64,000 bases of DNA, taken from the NCBI GenBank assembly GCA_965113315.1, contig OZ220365.1. The stretch is one strand, 5' to 3'. Both the position numbers and the translations under genes were made by a program. The notes beneath the pieces were generated by a model, which saw nothing but the letters and a program-made list of their open reading frames with translations, made no database searches and was not told the DNA's origin. How positions within the stretch are numbered: position 1 is the first letter of the stretch; the number at the start of each line of letters is the position of its first letter. The stretch comes from Podarcis vaucheri. Its lineage: Eukaryota. Of the stretch, positions 3,703-59,100 are shown in pieces.

Positions 3703-4059
3703 AAAGGTAAAGGGACCCCTGACCATTAGGTCCAGTCGCGGACGACTCTGGGGTTGCACGCACATCTCGCTTTACTGGCCGAGGGATCTGGCGTTTGTCC
3801 GCAGACAGCTTCCGGGTCATGTGGCTAGCATGACTAAGCTGCTACTGGCAAACCAAAGCAGTGCACGGAAATGCCGTTTACCTTGCCACCAGAGTGGTAC
3901 CTGTTTATCTACTTGCACTTCGTGCTTTCGAACTGCTAGGTTGGCAGGAGCAGGGACCGAGCAACGGGAGCTCACTCCATTGTGGGGATTCGAACCACCG
4001 ACTTTTTGATTGGCAAGCCCAAGGCTCAGTGGTTTAAACCACAGCGCCACCCGCGTCCC
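3703..4059 (-). mobile_element. Sauria SINE, full length
   Basis: Minus strand begins GGGACGCGGGTGGCGCTGTGG with tRNA-like box GGTTCGAATCC and ends in an ACCTTT-type tail; flanked by degenerate TSD TGTGTTTGTGGTA (3690-3702) / TGTATTTGTGGTA (4062-4074). Confidence 0.92.
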
Positions 4060-14289: not shown

Positions 14290-14900
14290 GGATAGAGTTG
14301 AGATTCCTGTGAAAGATCAGGTACTTAGCTTGGGAGCATTCCTTGATGCATTGCTGTTGGATAGGCAGGTAGCATTGGTTGCGAAGAGTGCCTTGTCCCA
14401 TCTTTGGCTAGTTTGCCAACTAAGAACTTTGCTTGCCACAGTCATTCATGCACTAGTGAAAGGGAAGCCAATGTGGTACCTTCTAGGTGTATGCAGAAGG
14501 GTCATAGCTCTGTAGTAGAGCATCTGCTAGGCACACAGGTCCCACCTTGAATTTCCAGAATGTTAAGGTAGGCCTGGAAAGATCTCACCCTGAAACTCTG
14601 GAGAGCTGCCACTAGTTAGTGTAAAAAAAAATACTGGGCCAGTTTGACTGTTAATCTGACTTGGTTTGAGGCAGATTATTATGTTCTGTTGTTGGACTCC
14701 AACTCCCATCAGCCACTGGCAGCATGGTCAATAGTCAGGGATGATGGGAGTTGGAGTCCAACGACATCCAGAGGGCACTATATTGGTACTGATGTAGTCT
14801 CATCCTCTACACTGGATTACTGTGTGGGGCTACCCTTGAAAAGTGTTCAGAAACTGCATTTGGGACAAAATGCTGCAGCCAGGTTGCTGACAGGTGCTAG
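14290..14900 (+). mobile_element. Degraded L2 LINE fragment interrupted by a tRNA SINE and a hAT MITE remnant
   Basis: Residual L2 ORF2 peptides (ATVIHALV...[27 protein letters not shown]); SINE head TCATAGCTCTGTAGTAGAGCA near 14502; GGACTCCAACTCCCATC hairpin near 14694-14760. Confidence 0.65.
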
Positions 14901-15346
14901 CATTTTGATTCCAATTTGCCCATTCTGAGATGTGTCTCCTGTGGTTCATTTAATGAATGTGACAGAATCCTGAGCTTCTTTCAAAACCCAAGTTACTTTC
15001 ATCATTAAGGGTAATTTCACTTTAAACCAAGAGCCTGGTGTGGATGATATTCTGCCCTGGGCATATGAGACTATCCAAAGGGCTGCCAATTTGAGAATCA
15101 CAACTAATATATGCTGTATGCTACTAAACTTTACTGCTAAGTGCAAAGGTAGCCCAACAAACCATGAAGATATGATGCTCTGAAATGAACACAGAACTCA
15201 ATGAGTTATTGGAAGCCATGCGAGCATTTTAAAATAAGGCTGCAGTTCTAATAATGCCACTGAAATTGATTAAATTTTCCATGTGTAGGGAGGGTGTGGA
15301 AGTTTGCCACAGGTTTCATTTAATATATTTGCATTAATGACAATAA

Positions 15347-15490
15347 GAGGGGTGGCTAAGCCACAGCCCTCTAGCTGTTGCTGAAGTACAACTCCCATCA
15401 TCTCTGACCATTGGCCATGCTGACTAGGGCTGATATACGGTAAGTTGTAGTTCAGCAGCAGCTGGAGGATCACGGGTGGTGCACTCCACA
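15347..15490. mobile_element. Degraded hAT-type MITE (same family as 43159-43296)
   Basis: Shares ACAACTCCCATCAT...AGTTGTAGT palindromic core. Confidence 0.6.
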
Positions 15491-18400
15491 CAGCCTGTTA
15501 TCTTTTTTTACATATATTGGCGCTGGCAGTCTGGAGAAGGTGCAATAAAGCTCATGGATAAAGCTGGCAGCCAAGCGAAATAGTGCATAGCTGGGCTGAC
15601 AGGTGGGTGGATTGGGAGCTGAAAGCCAGCAAAGCCTGTAGGGAGAGTCTGAAGAAAGCTTGATTTTTACCCAAAGGATGGGTTGTCAAAGCAGAATCAG
15701 AGGCGTTTTAAAGTGCCATTTGGAATCAACATTGGCCCCTTATGTCACCTTACCTCTGCTGACTAAATATCTACAGAACTGCCTTCTGGCTATTAGCAAT
15801 GATGGCACTCAAGCGGCAACAGAGATCAGGCCAGCCACTCTCTCTTCTGGCAGCCTGCCATGAAATATATCTGGGACTAGTTATCAAAGTCCCTCGTTCC
15901 ATATTGTTGACATCGAACAACAAAACCCCATTTGCTGCAAAAGTTAGGACTTATTCCCCCTCCTATCCCCAACGAATGAGTAACTTTAGCACAGAAGAGA
16001 ATGGCTGCATCAAATATTTAGCAGCTGCTCTTTGCACCCCTCAGTATCCTGCCATATCTAGTTTTTCATTTCTATATATTGCACAAATGTATCTTAGCAG
16101 AATCACAAAAGTCAGAAAGGGTCATCCAATTTCCCTACATTCCCTACATTCCCCTATTGTCTCCTACAATTTAAAAAGGCTTATGTTGTTGTTGTTTAAG
16201 TGCTGATTTAAAAGGCAAAACAAACAAAATAAAATATTGGGAATTTAGAAAGGGTTATGAGAAAAAAGCACGTTGACATGTTGGAATTGTGACTGATATG
16301 AACAGCATAACCCCATTAAAAGTCCTTCATCTTCACTTGTGGAATGTGCCTCGACCCTCTAACATAACTCCACTCTGAGCTTAATATGGAAAAGTCTCAG
16401 ATAGGTCTGTCTTGGGTCATATGTGAACTGAACACCAACTGCCTTGGGAGTTCTGGCTAATCATGGACCATGCAATCATGCACCACCTCCTGAAGCACCT
16501 TGCTCTGCTCACAAGTCATTGACTTAGATCCTAAGGTTGCAACCCTAACGATGTCTACTCAGAAACAAGTGCTCTTTAAATTAAAGGGGCTTACTTGCAG
16601 GTAAGTGGGATTTGGAGTGCAGCCTAAGCAAGCTTCTGCAGGTGGGAGTGTCATGTGAGTGGAATTCTGATCATGAGACTCTCTCACTAATGGAAGTGGA
16701 AAAGTGACTTTCAGTAAACTCCCTTTTCCCCTTGCCAATCTGCCGCAGAGAGTTATGAATGGTGCTCCACAGCAGCATTGCGCAACTGCTGGGGAAAGGA
16801 GAGATGAGCAAAAAAAAGACATACCACCCCATACTCTGCTAGATACCAGCTCCCTCCATGAATGTAAGCAGCCCTTTCATTAGCAGAGGACTAGTTAAGA
16901 TCCAAGTTTGGTAGCTAAAGGGTTTTTCAATGCACACTTAAATCTTAGGGTCATAGTGTTCTTACAATATCCAACAGAGAGAAGCTTGGATAGATAAGGC
17001 TGGTTGGCTCACACTGGTAGAGCTTAGATCACAGCAATCTTGAAGGTGCACAAGATAACACTAGTTTTTTTATGAGATAGAAGAGAACCACATACTTGAA
17101 TTAATGTGCCTATGCAAAAATGTCCCTTATTTGTAAAGCTAAGGCATTAGAAGGAAAGCTAGACTGGAAGCCTTCTGCCTGATATATATTAGTCTTATGT
17201 ATAATGGGAAGCTTGAGTGTGGAAATGCATTCAACCAAGCAACCCCCCTCCCTTGCATTTTCAGGGGGTATGTAAGGTTTATACTGCATCCCCTTGGTAA
17301 CAACATGTTTAATACATAAATAGATGCCTGTAGGCTGGAAAATAGGGAAAACAAACGAATATTTGAACTGGCTCAAATATCCCCTCGATTCACCCATATT
17401 GTTATTTGTACAATGGCAAAGAGGAGAGTAGCTAGATGGAGGAAAGAAATTACACAGGACATCCTTGATGGCAGAAGGGGAGAAGTCGGTCACAACTTGC
17501 TTTATTCTAGCTTAGCAGTAGCAAGGCAGGCAGGGCATGAAAACAATGGTTGGGTCTGCTAAAACCTTTTATCAAGTCATACTGTTGGTCTCCTTACTTC
17601 AGTATTGTCTACTCTGACTGGCAGTGGCTCTCCAGGCCAGGTACCAGGCAGGAGAATGTCTCAGCCCTACTTGGAGATGCCAAGTCTCTCTAGGTCTGGA
17701 GAAGTTGTCTCTCTAGATCTGTCCAACTCCTCCCTTAAGAACTTAACCAGGTCTTGATTGTGGGATTCCCATAGGCATCTGGTTGGCCAAACCAAATGAG
17801 ACACTGGTCTGATCCAGCAGGACTCTTTTTATACTCTTAACCTGACCAACTGAGCAAAGGGGGAGATCAGTCTCCCCAAGTCAAAGCCAAAACAGGCCAC
17901 TAATGGCCTGCCACTACTAGTGCAGAGATACTTCTGTCCCCCCTGTATCCTATCACACAGCACAAAGCAAGTCCACTAAAGAAAGCAAGGATCCAGCATT
18001 TCCTAAATGATATATCCCATCTGCTGAGAAATCAAAGTCATATTCCTTTCTTTAACTAATCTTGCTAAATAAATTCTTGGTAATCTGCAGTCATCACAAT
18101 CAAGACAGGCTCGTGGGTTTGTGTTGGTGGGTGACACATCTGTCCACATGTTGCCACCCAGGGGCTGCTCTGTTAAGATCCCCTTTCCAAGGCCGTGACA
18201 TTAAATTATATCAGACATTCAAGTGCAGACCATCCAGTACTCCCATTATTTTTGAAAAATGAGGTTGCGAAAGTCTAAGGCGCCTCATTCAATCTTGAGC
18301 AGCCTAACAAATAAAGCAGAGCTGCTCTATTTGTAACCTGGTAGCCCAGTTTGGAAAATAAATGAAAGTTTTGATTAAATCAATGTGTTTTAGATATGCA

Positions 18401-18755
18401 TTTAAAATATGAGCCTTCAGAAAGTTCACAGTATGAAAAAGCGGGAGAGAACCCTGTGCTTCTTCGGTTCATTTTGTTTAGTGGTCATTAATACGTTAAT
18501 TGCCTCATGAATACAACTGAAATATCTACACTTTTCAAATTGCAAAGCACTTATTATTGGAGAAAACTGTGTCTCATTTCCATGCACTGAGGAAAATGTA
18601 CTGTACCTATGTTTGTTTGTTTTTGAGAATTCTCCAGTATTTTTGGAGAGGTTTTATTTTTTTTAAGCCAATATTTAAAGAAATAGTGGGGTTTTGTTTT
18701 TAGTAACTTCATCTTTCTCTTGGTATTTTGCAGGGCTGTTACCTCTCTTCATGAC

Positions 18756-27478: not shown

Positions 27479-28950
27479 TCATAGAATCTTAGAGTTGGAG
27501 GGGATCCCAAGGGTCATCTAGTCCAACCCCTTGCAGCTCTGGACTCTCAGCTAAAGCATCCATGACAGATGGCCATCCAGCCTCTGTTTAAAAACCTCCA
27601 AGGAAGGAGAGTCCACCATCTCTCCACTGCTGAACAGCTCTTACTGTCAGAAAGCTTTTCCAAATGTTTATTTGGAATCTCCTTTCTTGTAACCTGAAGC
27701 CATTGGTTCAAGTCCTACCCTCCAGAGCAGGAGAAAACAAGCATGCTCCCTCCTCCATGTGACAGCCCTGAGGATGTTTCACCCCTCCCATTGCAAGAAT
27801 CTGCTGACAATGTTTCAGAAAGGATGGGGCGGATTTTGCTCATCGCTTCTTCTGCTACAGCCTGTAGGAGTCTGAGTGATATCTGTATATAGATAAGGTG
27901 ACTTCTCAAGCAACTGTAACACTCATGCAGTCCAGCGCCTCCAATTAGGCTTTAGTTAGTTTATGCAGTAGCTGTAGAGAATAAAAGAAGTTATACTTCA
28001 GAGCTGTCATTCATGTGGTTCATACTCTGCTGTGCTCCGTTGACTTTTGGAACTGAGTTTGGTGCTCACAGCTCTAAGTTGTGAGTCCACAGCACTTAGA
28101 CCTGCTCCCTGCAGTGGAAGGTCTCTGGAAGTGCTTTCCCAGCTCGCCTGGCCCACTCAGGGCTGAAAAGGTTGAGCCCAGTCGTTGACACTGGCTCAAA
28201 GACGAAGCTGACAAGCCCTTAAGATATTTGACGATAACTATCATATCTCCTCTCAGTCTCCTTTTTTACAGGCTAAATATACCCAGGTCCTTCAAGCGCT
28301 CCTCATAAGGTTTAGTTTCCAGACCCTTGATCATCTTGGTTGCCCCCCTCTGCACATGTTCCAGCTTGTCAACATCCATCTTAAATTGTAGTGCCCAGAA
28401 TTGGACATAGTATGCCAAGTATGGTCTGAGAAAGACAGAATAGAGTGGTACTATTGCTTCCCTTGATCTGGACACCACGTATATTTCTGTTGATGCAGCC
28501 TAGAATGGCATTAGCTTCTTCTTTTTTCTTCTTTTTTGCGCTGCTGCTGCATCACACTGTTTACTCATGTTTAGCTTGTGGTCCACCAAGACCCCTAGAT
28601 CCTTTTCTCATGCACTGCTAGTAAGCCAGGTGCCCCCCGTCCTATATTTGTGCATCTGGTTCTTCCTGCCTAAGTGCAGTTATATTTGTTCCTGCCTATT
28701 GAAATTCATTTTGTTAGCTTGTGCCCAGTTCTCCAATCTGTTAAAGTCATTTTGAATTCAGATTCTGCGGCATTAGCTACCCCTCCGAGTTTGATGTCAT
28801 CTGCAAATTTGATGAGCATCCCCTCAATTCCTTTATCCAAGTCATTTATAAAGATGTTGAACAACAACGGGCCCTGAACAGAACCCTGCGTCACCCCACT
28901 TGTCACTTTTTTCCAGGATGACGAGGAACCATAAATGAGTACCTCTTGGG
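27479..28950 (-). mobile_element. CR1 LINE, 5'-truncated and degraded, interrupted by a solo LTR
   Basis: Minus-strand peptides VTSGVTQGSVQGPLLFNIFINDLD...IKFADD and [11 protein letters not shown]...VQFW; ATTCTATGA-type tail at 27479. Confidence 0.9.
27769..28213 (+). mobile_element. Solo LTR (445 bp) nested in CR1
   Basis: TG...CA termini, 5-bp TSD AGCCC (27764-27768, 28214-28218), TATA-like TATATA near 27886, AATAAA at 27980; removing it rejoins the CR1 sequence. Confidence 0.75.
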
Positions 28951-33100: not shown

Positions 33101-36100
33101 TTATGACTATGTGAGGCATACACACCAAAAAGAAATTCAGTTTTTGAAGGAGAATGTACAGCACTCTGCACTGATTCCTGTATTGAGGCCATACCAAACT
33201 GAGGCTGTAAACTGGATGCTGCAGCGTGAGAACTTCAAAAATGTACCAACCAATGGCAAGTATCTCGAAAAAGGCAACATAAATATACATCTTGATTACA
33301 GTGATACTGATAGAAATTCATGATGATGTATTAGTTATAAGAAAGTCGCACATCATTCCCCACCTCAAGTAGCAAAAATTCAATGCCCTGCTTGTGTGAA
33401 TAGAACTGCTTTCTGCTAAGGCAAAGTTGCCAATGAATACAAGCCATTGTGCATCCTGGATTGCTGATCTTAGACATGCTCATATTGCATACATCAGCAC
33501 TTAGTTTATACACAACATAAGGGTTGTTTGTGTTTCTAACATACCAGGTGTGGCATTAATGTGCATCATTTGGTTCAGAAGTGGCTAATTACGAATAGAA
33601 CCCCCTTTAGGGAAATTTCATTCCCCCTCTCCCATATTTTTATTTTTGGCAATTTCCTTCCTAGTTATTGCTTATTTCCTTGATGCTGTAGGCAGGAAAT
33701 GTATGTAACCTGAATCTTAGATTATTACATCTGGAATATAGTAGGTACTCCATGTAAATTTCCATTTAGGGCAACTGGGGTCTGGGGATGGCTTAAATGC
33801 TGGAAACATTATGAGCTCTGAGAATTAGCTTCTGTAGATTACCTGTGATTCATAGTTCCTATTTAATTTACACGATTATCTTGAGAAGGAATAAAGTAGA
33901 CCTACACTAGCTAAGAGAGTAAGCTGTGGGTCAGAAAGTCTCTGGTTCATATCTAATCATGATCATAAACCCACTAGTTGGTCTTAGGCATGTACTTGGA
34001 CAAGTTGTCTTTCAAGCTTCTTGATCTGTAAAACTGGGCTTAATAATGCTGGTTTACTTTATGGGATTACTGTAAGGATTTGTGTATGTAAAACACTATA
34101 AAGTACTAAGTACTAAGTGGTGGTGTTACCCAGATTTACAATCTGGTCATTTAAGGGTCTTGTAACTATTTGTACTGGGTTCATTTAATCTTATAGAAGC
34201 TGAAGGGGCATTGGTCTGTAAGAGAACATAGGGCTCGAGGGATTGTGGAATGATCAAATAAGATTCCTCAGAGCTTCAGTTTCTGTACTTTCAACTTTGA
34301 AGATAAGCGAAGAAGCAGTCAAAATAAATTTAAATCATATGAGTAGCATTTGTATGAATCTCATTGTTTTCTTCTTTCTCTCAGTAGAAAATGCACTCCA
34401 CTTCTTATGGAGAGAGTTTATTACTTTAGATGGACTAAAACTGTACTATAATCCTTTTACTGGCTGGTAAGGATTATTGGTCTTATTATTACAGCCAAAG
34501 TGCATACAATTTAAGTAATTGTGTTTAATGCTATAAATATCACTCCAGCACTTGTTTTATGAAAATTCCTTAATGTGACTATTTCCTAGATTTAAGCAAT
34601 AAGAAATTATATAAATATCTTTTGAATACTTCTGAAGATGAGAAAGGAAAATATGACAGAGATTGGGAAAGGAATTAAAACTTAGTCTGATTTCATAGAC
34701 CCATAGAATTGTAACTTGAAAGGGACCCTGAGGGTCATGTAGACCAACCCTCTGCAACACAGAAATCTCAACACATGGTTCTCCATCCAATTTGAAAGTA
34801 TATTGGATCCTGCTTCATTTTGCAAATGAGCAGTTTTATTTAATTCTGTACTTGATTGATAATGAAATATATATCGTTTCCTTTCTGTTCTTAAAAAATG
34901 TGTAGGTACTAGGATTAAAGCAACTCTTATGATGGATTTTGTTATGTGTATATCTTAAATATTAGAGATTGGGTTGTCCACAATCCTTCTCCAAATGCAT
35001 GTATTTCTAGAATGTTACCTACTTCAGAAAATGCCAATGTAGTCATTTGCTTCTGTTAAATTTGTGATCAGAAATTATACATACACATAACATGTTCTTA
35101 ACTAGGATGAATCTTTGGTCTTCAGCATTATTCGTGAACGCCCAGTTGCTGGGCCTCAGTGGCCTGGAGGAATATTGGCAGATGAGATGGGCCTTGGAAA
35201 AACAGTAGAAGTATTGTCCCTTATCCTGACACACACTCGAAAGGATGTTAAACAGGATGCTCTGATGTTACCTGAGGTGAGAAATTTGTAGTAGGTATGA
35301 GAATGAAGCAAATGGTTCCAATACTCGAGAAGTGATTTGGTCCTTGCCGGGGTAGGTGGTGAGGGGAGAAGAGACCATTCTTGGTAGCAGAACATTGAGC
35401 TAGGGGTTTATTAGAACTGCTCTTTTATGTTTATATTCATAATAAATTATTCATTTTTTTTCATTTCCACAAGTCTTAAGTTTCATGTCCATCCATAATC
35501 AAATCCCATTTTATTAAAAATGGGGGGAAGTTTTATGATGTTTAAGCATATGTATACAAAAACAAACATGGGACTGGTTGCTTAACTGTGTATCTTCAGC
35601 ATTAATAAATACAACTTTAAAATCTGTATAAATTGAGCAAGAGTTTACCACTCAGTCTCAGATTTATGTTGGACCAGATTGTATGCTTATTTTTCGACAT
35701 GCCTGATTTTTTTCTACTGAAGTTCTTACTATTATACAATAGATTACAGGTTACCATCTAGAACCAAATGCCAAATTGGTCCAGAATTGAACCTCCTGAA
35801 TTGAACAAATTGATCTACAACCTACATAATCTGGTTGATCATAATAAATTTAGTATTAGACAATTTTAGAAGATACCAGAAGCACCAAGTTTCACAGAAT
35901 AGGGTTCATGAAAGTCAGGAAAATTGTTTTTGTTGACAAAATTTGTGTACTTCTCCCAGGGCCAAGCAAAATATACAGCATTCACTAGGCTAAGCTTATT
36001 GAGAGATTATCTTTATTTGTAAATTACTAGAATAACAAATTTTAGGTCAACATACAACCTTGTGTGTTTTTTTCTATGTTTTGAAGACCTTGCCTCATAC

Positions 36101-50100: not shown

Positions 50101-53100
50101 AGGTAAGAGGGACAGAGCAGGTCAAGACAGGGCCAGTCACTGCACAATTAGGACCTAAGGTTTATTAGGGCCTGGATAAAAGTTTGGCTGGGATAGCTGA
50201 AGCTGAAAAACTAGCAAGGCAAGAATGAATACCAATAGATCAGATGTTTTGAAGCTGACCAAGTAACTTTTCACAGATGATGAAAACAAGGATGTGACAT
50301 TTAATGAAGAACAAACTGTAGAATTGGAGAACAGAGTGGGAATTAGTGGCAATAGTTGTAGCGTTATATTTGAATAAGAATTAAGAGGGATAACAACCAA
50401 GTCCATTTGGATAGGAACAATGATTTGAAGGCAAGATTGCATGAAAATGCACACTAAAAATGATGGCATCCACTTAGGAGGCTGGTAAGTTTTCGTCTTG
50501 CTTAGGTGAGGCTGTTCTACCTTCAGTTGATTGCTTATAGACAAGAGCCAGCTATGCACACCCTCAAACCCTGGCAAGTTCTTTCTTTTATCATCCTTTG
50601 CTAGCTACTACAAGTGCCTGAGGGACGCGGGTGGCGCCGTGGGTAAAACCTCAGCGCCTAGGACTTGCCGATCGCATGGTCGGCAGTTCGAATCCCCGCG
50701 GCGGGGTGAGCTCCCGTTGTTCGGTCCCAGCTCCTGCCCACCTAGCAGTTCGAAAGCACCCTTAAGTGCAAGTAGATAAATAGGCACCGCTTTATAGCGG
50801 GAAGGTAAACGGCGTTTCCGTGTGCTGCTCTGGTGCCGGTTCGTCAGAGAAGCTTCGTCACGCTGGCCACGTGACCCGGAAGTGTCTGCGGACAGCGCTG
50901 GCTCCCGGCCTCTAGAGTGAGATGAGCGCACAACCCTAGAGTCTGAAGAAGTGTGCATGCACACGAAAGCTCATACCAAGAACTAACTTAGTTGGTCTTT
51001 AAGGTGCTACTGGAAGGAATTTTTTTATTTTGACTATGGCAGACCAACACGGCTACCTATCTGTAATCTGGTTAGGGTTAGGGTTAGGGTTTGGGTTTCC
51101 TGCTTGGCAGGGGGTTGGACTCGATGGCCCTTGTGGTCTCTTCCAACTCTATGATTCTATGATTCTATGATTCTAAGACTGGCCCGTACGGGCAGGGGTA
51201 CCTTTACAAGTGCCTGAGTAATGTTTCAGGTTGTACAAAGGAGCATTATGTATTAACTTTATTTGGAAAATTCATAAATGGCTTATATCTCCAAGCAATG
51301 TACAGATAAAATGTGGCAAAAAACCCAATTAAAAATAAATATGCACAAGATATTTTTTTAAAAAAATAAAACCAACAAAACTTGATAGGCTTGCTAAAAT
51401 GGGAGAGTTTTCAGCATATGTTTTAAACAATGTAGTAATGGTGCCTTCTTAATGTCAGTAGCCAGGAAATTCCAGGGCACATGCCACACATGGAAAAACT
51501 CGATCACAAATGCACAACAGGCAGCTTATGCGACTGCAAAAGTTGTAGTTCTGCAGATCAAAGTGATTGAATAGGCACATGTGGGGCAAGGTGAATTTCT
51601 TAAATAAACTGGTCCCAAGGAATTAAGAGTTTTATATACCTTAATATCAGTTTATTTTGCTAATGCCATTAAAACATCTAATGCTTAATATATGCTAGCA
51701 CTAATAAGGTGATAGACAGGATCTCTGCCCAGAGTAGAAATTCACAGTGTTAAAGGTAATTATCCAGATAAGTGTTATGGATAAAGTAATATTTCATTGT
51801 TGTCCAGAACTGGTAAGTTACATCTGTTGTTGATGATATTCAAATAAACTTGCGATATTCCAGATAAACATGAATATCCTTTCTATTTAGAAAAGCTGTG
51901 TAAGTTTCGCTGTGTTCTAGGGATAAGGGCAGTCCTTACTGAAATATGGCTTTCAAAGAAAATATTCCCTATGGTTGGTTGGTCTTACTTACTATGGGTT
52001 GCCCATAGAATCATAGAGTTGGAAGGTACCCCGAGGGTCATCTAGTCCAACCCCCCTGTGATGCAGGAATCTCAACACAAATGTCTCTTGAGTCCTTCTG
52101 TAGATTTTGTTTTAGGTAGCAGCTGTGTTCATATGTGATTCTAGCTTGGTATAGCAATTTATGTTGTGGCCTTTCTGGAGAGTGAAAGTAATTAAAAATG
52201 GCCTAACACTCTTCTAAAAAACATAGGATTCTATTTCATCTACATTCACTGGTAATAATGTATCAACTATTAACTAACAATGTTATAAGTATTTCAGTGT
52301 TTGGTGTCTTTCTCTCTCTTTCATTTAAAAAACAGTGTGAGCAACTCCGTCAACATTATATGAGCAAATCAAATGCAGAAGTTTCTGAAGCCCACCAGGC
52401 TTTGCAACCAGTGCTACAGACAATCCATGAACTCCAGAAGAAAGTAAGACTTTGTAATATTTTTGACTTGCCTTTTGATGATATGTGGGAGCTTATAAAT
52501 CTCTAAAAATGTGTCCATGAAAAGATTCCCTACTGCAACAAGCTGGATTAGAAGTGGAGTTCTAGAAAATTGGCCTTCAGTGGGTTATATCCAATGGTGC
52601 AGTTCCATTAATGCAACAGACTGCCACAGTGCAGGTGAATTTCTACCCGTACAACAGGACTCTCTGTGGTTCTCCTGCTCCCTGCAGCCCCACTCGTGCC
52701 TTCAAAAGTCTCCTGCAGAGCAGATTTTTGTGGGTGCAGGGAGGGAGGGAGGAGAGGAAGGCAAAGTCTTGTTATGTGAATTAAAATGTGCATGCCAGTT
52801 TTAGATACAACTAACGCACTGTTCTTCCACATAGTTTCTACGGAATAATGTATGTTCACGTTTCTCTGCCTCACTCCTGTCTGTAAACATTTAAGATGCA
52901 TAAATTGACCTGTGAATATACAAGTTAACAGCTTAAGTATGTGCAAATGTTATAAAACTTTAGAACTTGCCAAATAAAATAGATAAAGCAAATTTTCTTT
53001 ATCACGGATTTTTTCTGTTCTTCCAAGGAGCTCATTCCATCTTAGGCTAATTTACTTCACACTTGACAATGGACAAAAGAGCATGATTGGCTGAAGCTCA

Positions 53101-56100: not shown

Positions 56101-59100
56101 CAGCATCTTCTTGGAACTTTTTGAAGCATGGAAAAAGGAATATAAGGTACAACAGCAAGAAGAAATCATGGTGAAAAGTTCAGAACATAAGGAGCATTTT
56201 GAGTTGGTTGGTTGATAGGCATATAGACAACTCATGCGTAACAGTCATAGTGATTGATTGATTTGTAAACCTCCTTTCCACAAAAACATGCTGCTTACAA
56301 AAATTATAATGACGAGTCATAAAACAGCAATATATAATGGTGGTGCTGTAGTCTAAACCACTGAGCCTCTTGGGCTGGCTGATTAGAAGGTTGGCGGTTC
56401 GAATCTGTGCGACGGGGTGAGCTCCCATTGCTCCGTCCCAGCTTCTCCCAACCTAGCAGTTCCAAAGCATACCATCCAGGGGTCCTTTACCTTTACCTTT
56501 TACCTAACAGATAATCATTTCATACAATGATAATTCATTCAATAAAGAATAAGGATGGTAATAATACATAGCACATACAACCACAACATTTCATATGTGT
56601 GATCAGTATGTATATTCTTATTTCTGTGTTAGGCAATTGTCACAGGCCACCATGACCCCTTGCATTTCATAATCTTTTGATTTCACTGTTCACAGTTGTT
56701 TTCTTTTGGGTGGGCGGAGATGCACATAATGTAAATGGTCTCAGTGCGCAAATACGTAACCAAATGTGTTGGGTAACATATACTCAAAAGGTTCTGCTCT
56801 GAATAATGAAAGGGTATGCCACAACAAAATGGTTAATGTACCACAGAGCTCTTTGTTATAGATGTTCCCAAAGCAGTTTTCTCTAAACTAAAGGGCTTGT
56901 TTTGAAATGCCATTCCCAGCTCTTCATTGCTCATGTCTCAACCCTTAAGTGCAGGATGGAGGCTTTGTCATACAGGCAGTCAAATTACTGGTGCTAATCA
57001 GCCATTTATGACATTAATGTCCTTCTAGTGTTGCAAGTGGGGAACAAATTGTCTCTTCGCATACGGTTGCTTTGAGGACACATATGGAGACGTGTTACCA
57101 GTGACAGAAAAGGCTGTGCATTTGTATCTTCCATCTGTCCAGTACTAGTAAACTTTCAATTGGCTATGTAGTCTTTGCTGTACTGTACCTGGTAACTCTA
57201 CCAAGGCCTCATGTTCTGTGATGCATGGTAGCAGCATTTAAAAACTGAAAATTGATTCCTGTGAAGGCATTTTTAAGTTGATATAGTTCTTTATTCCTCA
57301 AACTATAGCTATTGGCTAAGAGAATGAATTGTAAACTAGGAAGCTGTAGGTTAAGTCTCATTTTAGGCAGAAATTAAGTAGTCTTTAGGCAAGAGGTAGT
57401 GTCACAGCATTGGATCCATAGCTGCAGTTTGAGGATGATAATAATACAAGCTTACTTCCCTAGGTCATTGTAATGATATATACATGATATATGTGCTAAG
57501 AGTACTGTACCTTTAAAATATTGACTTATATTTTCTCTAGTTTTGCCATGTTTCAAGTTATTTTGTGAAAGCAGGCTTTTTATTCTGTCTTTGGACCCTT
57601 TAAAAGCAATAACAACCAGGAATTGTGCATACTGAAGTGTGCTTAGTTTTGCAAAAATAGCTGGTTTTCCCACTCATAGCTAACACAGAATTTCTAGTTT
57701 ACTGTAACTTTCTTCTGTGTACCTGTGTGGGTGGGTATGCATATGTTTTGCACTACAAAGTACAGTAATTTTACAGTGCAAAGCTGTAATTTTCCATTAG
57801 ATTTTTTTCTGTTGGTGTTATTTTGAAATCCTGAGTGCTGGGACACAGAATTATTTGTTAACCACAGCTTACTGTGCTGCTGCTGATTATCTTTTTATCT
57901 TCCCTTCAGCTGCTTCATGAATATTGGATGGTCCTCCGAGATCACGTGTCTGCCATTGATGAGCTTGCCATGGCTACAGAACGGTTTAGAGTGCGTCATC
58001 CGGAAGAGCCCAAACCCAACCACCCTGTTCTTCACATAATTGAGCCGCATGAGGTGACAAGATTGCATTGCATCTGAAAAACAGTAGTGCTGATTAAGCC
58101 ACCATTTGGGACTGCTGCTTGCCACTAAACAGGACTTTAAAACGTCAGTCCTGCTGTTTGTTGAATGTTCTTTTTGTAGCATCTCTTCATTGTTTTGGGA
58201 CTAGATATAACTTGCACACCAGGATTATGTGTTTATTGTATTATATCTAGAGATTGCCTTAATGATCACTGAATGGTTCCATTTCTTTTCTAGGTAGAAC
58301 AAAATCGAGTGAAACTCCTGAACGACAAAGCAGTTGCCAAATCACAGCTTCAGAAGAAACTGGGCCAGCTCCTCTACCTCACTAATTTGGAAAAGGTAAG
58401 GTTGACTTGCACCATTTCCAAATTACATTCATGCGGAACCCTCTATTACCTTGTAGATACGATTTTCTCTTTAATCTTCCCTCCTATTGTTTGAATATCT
58501 AAAAGAAAGAAATGAGGGAACAGGGATTCCTACTTTGCATTGGCATTATCCTCAAAGAGATTCTTAGAGCCGAGACAAGAAAAGCTGTGCTGAGGTTCTG
58601 CAGATTTTACCTCATACCTTCAAGTATGTCCAGTTTGGATTTAAAGGGTACAGGATAGACTCAAAACTATGACTCCTTAAACAGCTGTAGATACCTATTG
58701 CAGATGTTTGTATACCTATGTCAAGAAGCAGGATACCTTCCAGACTGTGCTTCATAGCTCTAAATAATACAGTGGACCCTCCGGACACGAACTTAATTCA
58801 TTCCGGGTGTCTGTTCGCACCCCAAAAATTACTTAAGTAGATGCAGCATTTCTGTGCACACGCGCGGCGCAGTTGAGCGCTTCTGTGCATGTGTGAGGCA
58901 CGCAGAGTGCTTCTGTGCATGCGCAAGGTGCGTAGAGCGCTTCCGGGTTTGCCGTGTTCACAACCCGAAAGTTACGTTACCCGAAGGTAACATAACCCAA
59001 ACGTCCACTGTATACAAATTGCTAACCTTCACATAATTGGGACTTTCTGCTGATTTGTCACTGCAAACTGCTCTAATTAAACAAAAGGAAAAATCTCATT

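Follow-up and report, generated by a model that had tools for sequence, protein, structure and literature searches.

How do the end of a Penelope-like element (PLE), a run of telomere-type repeats and the tail of a CR1 long interspersed element (LINE) come to lie fused in one orientation within a single short interspersed element (SINE)? The question is raised by a Sauria SINE in a stretch of Podarcis vaucheri DNA (contig OZ220365.1 of assembly GCA_965113315.1), the whole 64,000 nucleotides of which are referred to as the window. The SINE is split near its 3' end by a 229-bp insert (50946-51174) in which the parts, all co-oriented, follow one another in the order Penelope 3' end, telomere-type repeats and CR1 tail. 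The insert is a variant of known chimeric retro-insertions and fuses CR1, telomeric and Penelope sequences. A locus-specific, one-off chimera formed at a single break in the freshly inserted SINE, between ...GAGTCTG and (TC)AAGACTGG, is the reading favoured here, with a probability of roughly one half. The features on which the argument draws are the following.

50609-50622, plus strand: 5' copy of the target-site duplication (TSD) of the SINE, TACAAGTGCCTGAG, a 14-bp exact repeat whose only two occurrences start at 50609 and 51205
50623-50945, plus strand: 5' part of the Sauria SINE, reaching consensus ...CCCTAGAGTCTG (identity, read depth and CpG content)
50942-50945, plus strand: TCTG overlap between the SINE consensus and the hammerhead core (SINE joints, and other Penelope contigs aligning from 50942)
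50943-50972, plus strand: Penelope-type minimal hammerhead core (descriptor scan)
50946-51071, plus strand: 3'-terminal fragment, truncated at its 5' side, of a Penelope-like element present in many copies (read depth, copy ends and hammerhead)
Within 50946-51071, plus strand: AC-rich region followed by a "tail" of about 39 bp at 51033-51071 (copy ends and depth steps)
51072-51095, plus strand: (TTAGGG)3 TTTGGG (Tandem Repeats Finder, TRF)
51096-51174, plus strand: CR1 LINE 3' module with two hairpins and (TCTATGAT)3.5 = ATTCTATG octamer tail (alignment, TRF and fold)
51175-51204, plus strand: 3' end of the Sauria SINE, AAGACTGG...GGGGTACCTTT, aligning to a SINE 3' end at 3707-3737 on the minus strand
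51205-51218, plus strand: 3' copy of the TSD, TACAAGTGCCTGAG, the same exact 14-bp repeat

Raw reads of four runs were aligned to the sequence, with 51063-51104, which spans both internal junctions, masked as a simple repeat. The limits of the insert are placed at 50946 and 51174 because other copies of the SINE join 50945 to 51175 with only two nucleotides in between. About 26,600 raw reads make this joint directly, and the two nucleotides are TC (19,048 reads) or GC (7,364 reads). Loose-end consensuses read ...CCCTAGAGTCTGTC ahead of 51175, and the SINE consensus across the break is ...GAGTCTG+TC+AAGAC. The insert has cost the target no more than 2 bp of SINE consensus, and no TSD surrounds the 229-bp insert as judged from the SINE consensus across the insertion point. 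Sauria SINEs fall into two subfamilies at this point. In the young, abundant subfamily the sequence is ...GAGTCTG-TC/GC-AAGACTGG, and in the rarer one it is ...GAGTC-GGACAC/GGTCAC-GACTGG; an older copy at 3707-4059(-) resembles the rarer one.

The host SINE is very young by its CpG content (32 CpG in 353 bp, observed/expected 0.97), and its TSD is a perfect 14 bp with no extension beyond that length. It is classified as Sauria because of its 78% identity to the uninterrupted second copy at 3707-4059(-), its copy number, its ACCTTT tail and its TSD signature. Read depth over the SINE climbs to about 120,000, compared with 1-2 in unique flanking sequence (raw whole-genome shotgun run of a close relative), and the 3' end consists of one ACCTTT unit, as for Sauria_POM. 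The TSD begins with TA (TACAAG...) and a TTT lies 10-12 nt upstream at 50597-99. A Tn-TA signature and an (ACCTTT)n 3' end have been reported for Sauria SINEs, and the studied copy shows the 3' ACCTTT, the T(A)-starting TSD and the T-stretch about 10 nt upstream (PMC13295347). ARAGORN called no tRNA in the SINE head (50580-50760), which is usual for degenerate SINE heads. A further Sauria SINE at 56339-56469(+), a 5' fragment only, is 76% identical to the studied copy. Among the relatives, organism C (run X12) has one contig (depth 14.6) that spans the left flank (50450-50608) but stops at 50608, and variants of the right flank (51225-51285) are carried at the same depth, 14.6, which suggests an empty site without the SINE; contigs across the flank-SINE junctions are present in organisms A and B. 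The SINE insertion may be lineage-specific and may be usable as a marker.

The first part of the insert is a copy of an abundant and little-diverged family, since read depth over it is in the thousands and variants are few. Raw-read depth in successive 31-bp bins is about 10,000, 12,300, 8,500 and 3,400, with flanks at 1-2, and only a handful of common variant sites is seen in the reads (50984 T/A, 50999 T/C, 51027 A/G and an extra T after 51019). The alignments of other Penelope copies stop at 51028-51032 or at 51059 and the depth falls there. Contigs that carry other copies of the segment align from 50942 in two organisms, and these contigs do not run on into the telomeric and CR1 parts. The window holds no full-length relative of the element with an RT / GIY-YIG reading frame. 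In PAc, a Poseidon element of Anolis, reverse transcription starts internally at an AC-rich stem-loop, 111-118 nt into the open reading frame (ORF), and an optional "tail" of 30-40 bp lies between two alternative start sites of reverse transcription (PMC11167929). Two genomic length classes of the Penelope end appear to exist in the lizard, one ending at about 51030 and the other about 39 bp longer, which would fit the PAc short form and the tail. The segment in the insert ends 124-126 nt after A6 of the hammerhead, just beyond the AC-rich stretch. This would make the region of 51071 a probable Penelope 3' terminus, the exact terminus falling within the masked 51063-51104.

At its 5' end this fragment bears the hallmarks that Cervera and de la Pena listed for metazoan Penelope hammerheads (PMC4209133). 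The core CUGANGA ... GAAA is present, with CUGAAGA at 50943-49 and GAAA at 50965-68. A50950 is bulged and a G50951-C50964 pair (G10.1-C11.1) closes helix II, which has 5-6 bp (GUGUG/CACAC). A palindromic AGCU at 50968-71 (A15.1-G-C-U16.1), the dimer-forming helix III of this type, precedes the U-H cleavage site at C50972 (C17), after which the cut is predicted; the predicted cut lies 26 nt after A6, a distance equal to that in Anolis PAc (PMC11167929). A descriptor of our own for minimal hammerhead ribozymes matched at one site in the 64 kb and nowhere in 200 Markov shuffles. An Rfam scan of 50500-51300 at E<=10 returned no hammerhead and no other meaningful family, a blank that is expected because the motif is of the minimal Penelope type and here also lacks the 5' strand of helix I. 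In place of the 4-5 bp that helix I would form with sequence 5' of the core, SINE sequence lies upstream, and it can make only about 2-3 pairs with 50973-77 (A-U, U-G and one C-G). To judge from these letters, the hammerhead would be a truncated passenger that is not expected to cleave, because its native helix I 5' strand is lost. Cleavage by PLE hammerheads is poor in the absence of protein even when they are intact (PMC4209133, PMC11167929).

The fragment shares with endonuclease-positive (EN+) Penelope/Poseidon elements the core, the bulge, the long helix II, the palindromic 15.2-16.2, the 26-nt distance from A6 to the cut, the high copy number and, probably, an AC-rich 3' end about 110-125 nt downstream with an optional tail of 30-40 bp (PMC4209133, PMC11167929). 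It differs from them in that the lizard copy is truncated within the ribozyme, the target is not AT-rich or (TA)n, and the 3' neighbour is telomeric.

The telomere-type repeats form the sole such site in the 64-kb window. TRF reports 4.7 copies at 95% identity, and none of 100 shuffles reaches 3 matches. The GG at 51070-71 precedes the block in register. In-register nucleotides have been found at 77.5% of loci where interstitial telomeric sequences (ITSs) were inserted at breaks, compared with an expectation of at most 25% (PMC7215372), and the lizard locus combines an in-register upstream GG with a target loss of no more than 2 bp. Short ITSs made by telomerase at double-strand breaks likewise place a small number of TTAGGG units internally, with in-register nucleotides at the upstream end and a small target deletion, and sometimes with extra filler (PMC2246262, PMC7215372). 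At the lizard locus, in contrast, the filler consists of two retroelement termini that flank the repeats, and there is no TERC-derived sequence.

Other origins of the repeats were considered and rejected. Retrotranscription of telomerase RNA (TERC) is ruled out since the repeats are flanked by Penelope and CR1 sequences that are not telomerase-RNA-like. Priming of either element by a telomeric G-overhang would give CCCTAA rather than TTAGGG on the sense strand, and the same strand logic would give CCCTAA here if the CR1 reverse transcriptase (RT) had copied the telomerase RNA template. The sequence-only reading had hinted at a link to the telomere-associated Athena elements. Athena and Coprina, which are endonuclease-deficient PLEs, do share a hammerhead beside telomere-type repeats, but they carry reverse-complement repeats at the sense 3' end and sit at chromosome ends (PMC8557442). 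The repeats of the insert read forward TTAGGG in the Penelope sense at an internal site, which rules out an Athena-like telomere attachment, and the lizard Penelope family has the appearance of ordinary dispersed EN+ elements. The hinted link is thus abandoned.

The third part is the 3' module of a CR1 LINE. Its hairpins lie at 51099-51111 and 51112-51149 (fold z = -1.9), and they are followed by 3.5 perfect octamer units (TCTATGAT) that TRF places at 51148-51175 with 100% identity. The 3' end of CR1 is defined by 1-4 octamers ATTCTRTG (PMC2612034), and the insert has such octamers at the very 3' end of its CR1 part. Identity of the tail to the window's three other CR1 tails is 75-86%, and the structured 3' untranslated region (UTR) upstream of the octamers is shared with other copies. 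The other tails, found by alignment to the studied one, are these.

52004-52075, minus strand: CR1 3' tail
27479-27534, minus strand: CR1 3' tail
34693-34771, minus strand: CR1 3' tail

All of these copies are short, and a Pfam search of the ORFs near them gave nothing, with no recognisable RT. Read depth over the CR1 part is 14,500-18,500, and other CR1 copies in the reads end near 51170, where they run into unrelated AT-rich flanks. In the insert the octamers directly abut the SINE AAGACTGG, which is the geometry of target-primed reverse transcription (TPRT). The pre-integration sites of CR1 have been reported to share bases with the octamer (PMC2612034).

Much of this had been proposed by the sequence-only reading. 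Its young, CpG-rich Sauria SINE with a perfect 14-bp TSD is upheld by the CpG ratio and the exact repeat, and the three co-oriented parts do interrupt the SINE near its 3' end, with their limits now corrected to 50946-51174. The reads that join 50945 to 51175 agree with its statement that the insert has no TSD of its own. Its overlap of the 5' junction with the ribozyme core is also found, as CTG or TCTG is common to the SINE consensus and the core. The descriptor recovers the sequence hallmarks of the proposed hammerhead, with the 5' strand of helix I missing, while TRF and alignment recover the telomeric block at 51072-51095 and the CR1 octamer tail.

What, then, joined the parts? Microhomology of 2-4 nt is present at all three junctions: TCTG between SINE and Penelope, GG between Penelope and telomeric repeats, and TT(T) between telomeric repeats and CR1. 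The core letters C3, U4 and G5 of the hammerhead fall within the TCTG, so the 5' junction overlap is 3-4 nt. The enzymes and the order of events that we infer for a one-off chimera are as follows. After a single break in the SINE, the bottom-strand 3'-OH on the right side would have primed CR1 RT on the CR1 3' module (the octamers and two hairpins); this step is proposed from the TPRT-like contact between the CR1 tail and the target. Copying of the CR1 RNA would have been left unfinished after about 79 nt, and telomere-type repeats, together with the last 126 nt at the 3' end of the Penelope-like element, would have closed the gap to the left end. The bridging may have been a double template switch of the RT, from CR1 RNA to UUAGGG-repeat RNA and on to Penelope RNA. 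Alternatively, the left end may have been extended on Penelope cDNA and then by telomerase from the terminal GG. The product would have been sealed through the 2-4 nt microhomologies at each junction.

Several features favour a one-off event of this kind. The insert lacks a TSD, no more than 2 bp of target was lost, and a canonical CR1 end stands against the target. The Penelope part and the CR1 part both have abundant, young parent families, whose read depth exceeds that of unique sequence by a factor of thousands. The parts share one orientation, a trait of LINE template-switch chimeras, tripartite ones included (PMC2104539). Ahead of the tail, TTAGGG is absent from the other three CR1 copies of the window, which speaks against the possibility, raised by the sequence-only reading, that the repeat is a normal part of the local CR1. 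A stepwise assembly by chance would need independent hits at identical nucleotides, as misplaced SINE or telomeric remnants are lacking.

The closest known systems are the template-switch chimeras of LINEs, namely the U6/L1 chimeras of L1 and those of MGL in Magnaporthe (PMC2104539). They share with the lizard insert the head-to-tail, co-oriented and direct fusion of unrelated transcripts and the 5'-truncated LINE end at the 3' side, beside the target, and double jumps are documented among them. In the lizard, however, CR1 takes the place of L1 or MGL, and it is joined to a telomeric repeat in the middle and to a Penelope terminus at the 5' side. The fungal tripartite MGL chimera also has a 14-bp TSD whereas the lizard insert has none.

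This last difference is one of several points that weigh against a one-off chimera, given that classic template-switch chimeras are flanked by TSDs. The missing TSD weighs little since CR1 insertions often occur without one. The CR1 part is exactly the minimal module for RT recognition, as a CR1-dependent SINE would carry. If the Penelope end truly lies at the canonical start of reverse transcription, a product of Penelope RT is implied, which fits poorly with a random template switch by CR1 RT. Finally, the 24-nt telomeric template in the middle demands two switches over a short distance.

Under the first rival explanation, the insert belongs to a multi-copy non-autonomous composite or was retrocopied from a read-through transcript, itself chimeric, of a single source locus. 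The composite would have a Penelope pseudo-long terminal repeat (pLTR)/hammerhead head, a telomeric spacer and a CR1 3' module, would be mobilised by CR1 RT, and would be represented here by a copy that is 5'-truncated in the hammerhead. The CR1 part starts exactly at the foot of the first hairpin of the 3' UTR and contains both hairpins and the octamers, and this module is what CR1 RT is thought to recognise. The right junction resembles an ordinary CR1-type insertion, 5' truncation with microhomology is the usual fate of LINE-mobilised copies, and the parts share one orientation. LINE-dependent SINEs offer a parallel. The Sauria SINE itself, with its Bov-B tail, is a LINE-dependent SINE that borrows the 3' tail of a LINE. 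Such SINEs share with the insert a foreign head joined to a LINE 3' recognition module of about 80 nt, but the insert has no pol III head, its head would be a Penelope pLTR end, and it stands as a single copy in the window. A second copy of the composite is absent from the 64-kb window and, as noted above, the contigs on which the Penelope segment recurs lack the telomeric and CR1 continuation. A composite family or a read-through retrocopy is considered doubtful, and it is likewise unlikely that the insert is a copy of an active, undescribed non-autonomous retroelement with such a head, spacer and tail. A nearly as novel alternative to such an element is one break healed by three RTs, namely CR1 RT, Penelope RT and telomerase.

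A second rival explanation treats the site as a hot spot that was hit in two steps. A truncated Penelope copy with its tail would have been inserted first, the Penelope endonuclease (EN) would later have re-cut its 3' junction, and telomerase repeats plus a short retrocopy of CR1 would then have filled the break. Penelope EN has been reported to recognise existing Penelope fragments with a tail and to cut them, both strands being cut in the case of Anolis PAc (PMC11167929). The scheme would explain why the telomeric and CR1 parts sit exactly at the Penelope 3' terminus, and the GG is in register for telomerase. However, no intermediate allele is seen, the SINE is so young that three successive events would have to fit into a short time, and the site is not AT-rich, unlike the reported targets of Penelope (PMC11167929). 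The two-step scheme is thus judged improbable. The weakest explanation, unrelated nested insertions at the same nucleotides by chance or an assembly artefact, draws on the great abundance and activity of all three families but is very improbable, since an exact abutment of three parts without displaced remnants is very unlikely, long reads are far longer than the 229-bp insert, which lies within unique flanks, and both flanks are covered by organism A contigs that show no differences.

The sequence-only reading had left the choice between a mobile family and a one-off break-repair or template-switch product. Its identification of the parts and of the host holds, and the choice itself now leans to the one-off product because of the microhomology at the junctions, the in-register GG, the TPRT-like CR1 end, the young and abundant parent families and the absence of TTAGGG ahead of the window's other CR1 tails.

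Wider searches touched the insert and its surroundings. A search for protein homologues of a 54-codon ORF that crosses both internal junctions gave no candidates, such ORFs probably lying outside the collection. A metagenome scan with an 18-mer of the Penelope AC-rich region gave 19 loci, all of them chance, bacterial-looking matches with no extended homology. Among them, the contigs L003, L006 and L019 are identical around the chance match and represent the same or closely related sequence, unrelated to the lizard element. Further along the window, an AT-rich short tandem repeat lies at 51836-51877 (period 20, 2.2 copies, 79% matches).

Under either reading, one-off chimera or multi-copy composite, the sequence would make the hammerhead a truncated passenger with no expected activity. 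To our knowledge, chimeras of this kind have been documented mainly for L1 and a fungal LINE. If the insert is a one-off product, it is a clean and very young reptile example of a CR1-anchored retro-insertion that joins in sequences of two other reverse-transcription systems. It would then bear on the processivity and template jumping of CR1 RT and on the role of telomerase or telomeric RNA in the repair of retrotransposition intermediates. If a composite family is real, the hybrid would hijack the transcription and ribozyme of one class of element and the RT of another. Such a multi-copy hybrid would represent a non-autonomous element of a new type. It would also scatter telomeric repeats at interstitial sites across squamate genomes, in which repeats of this sort are unusually common.

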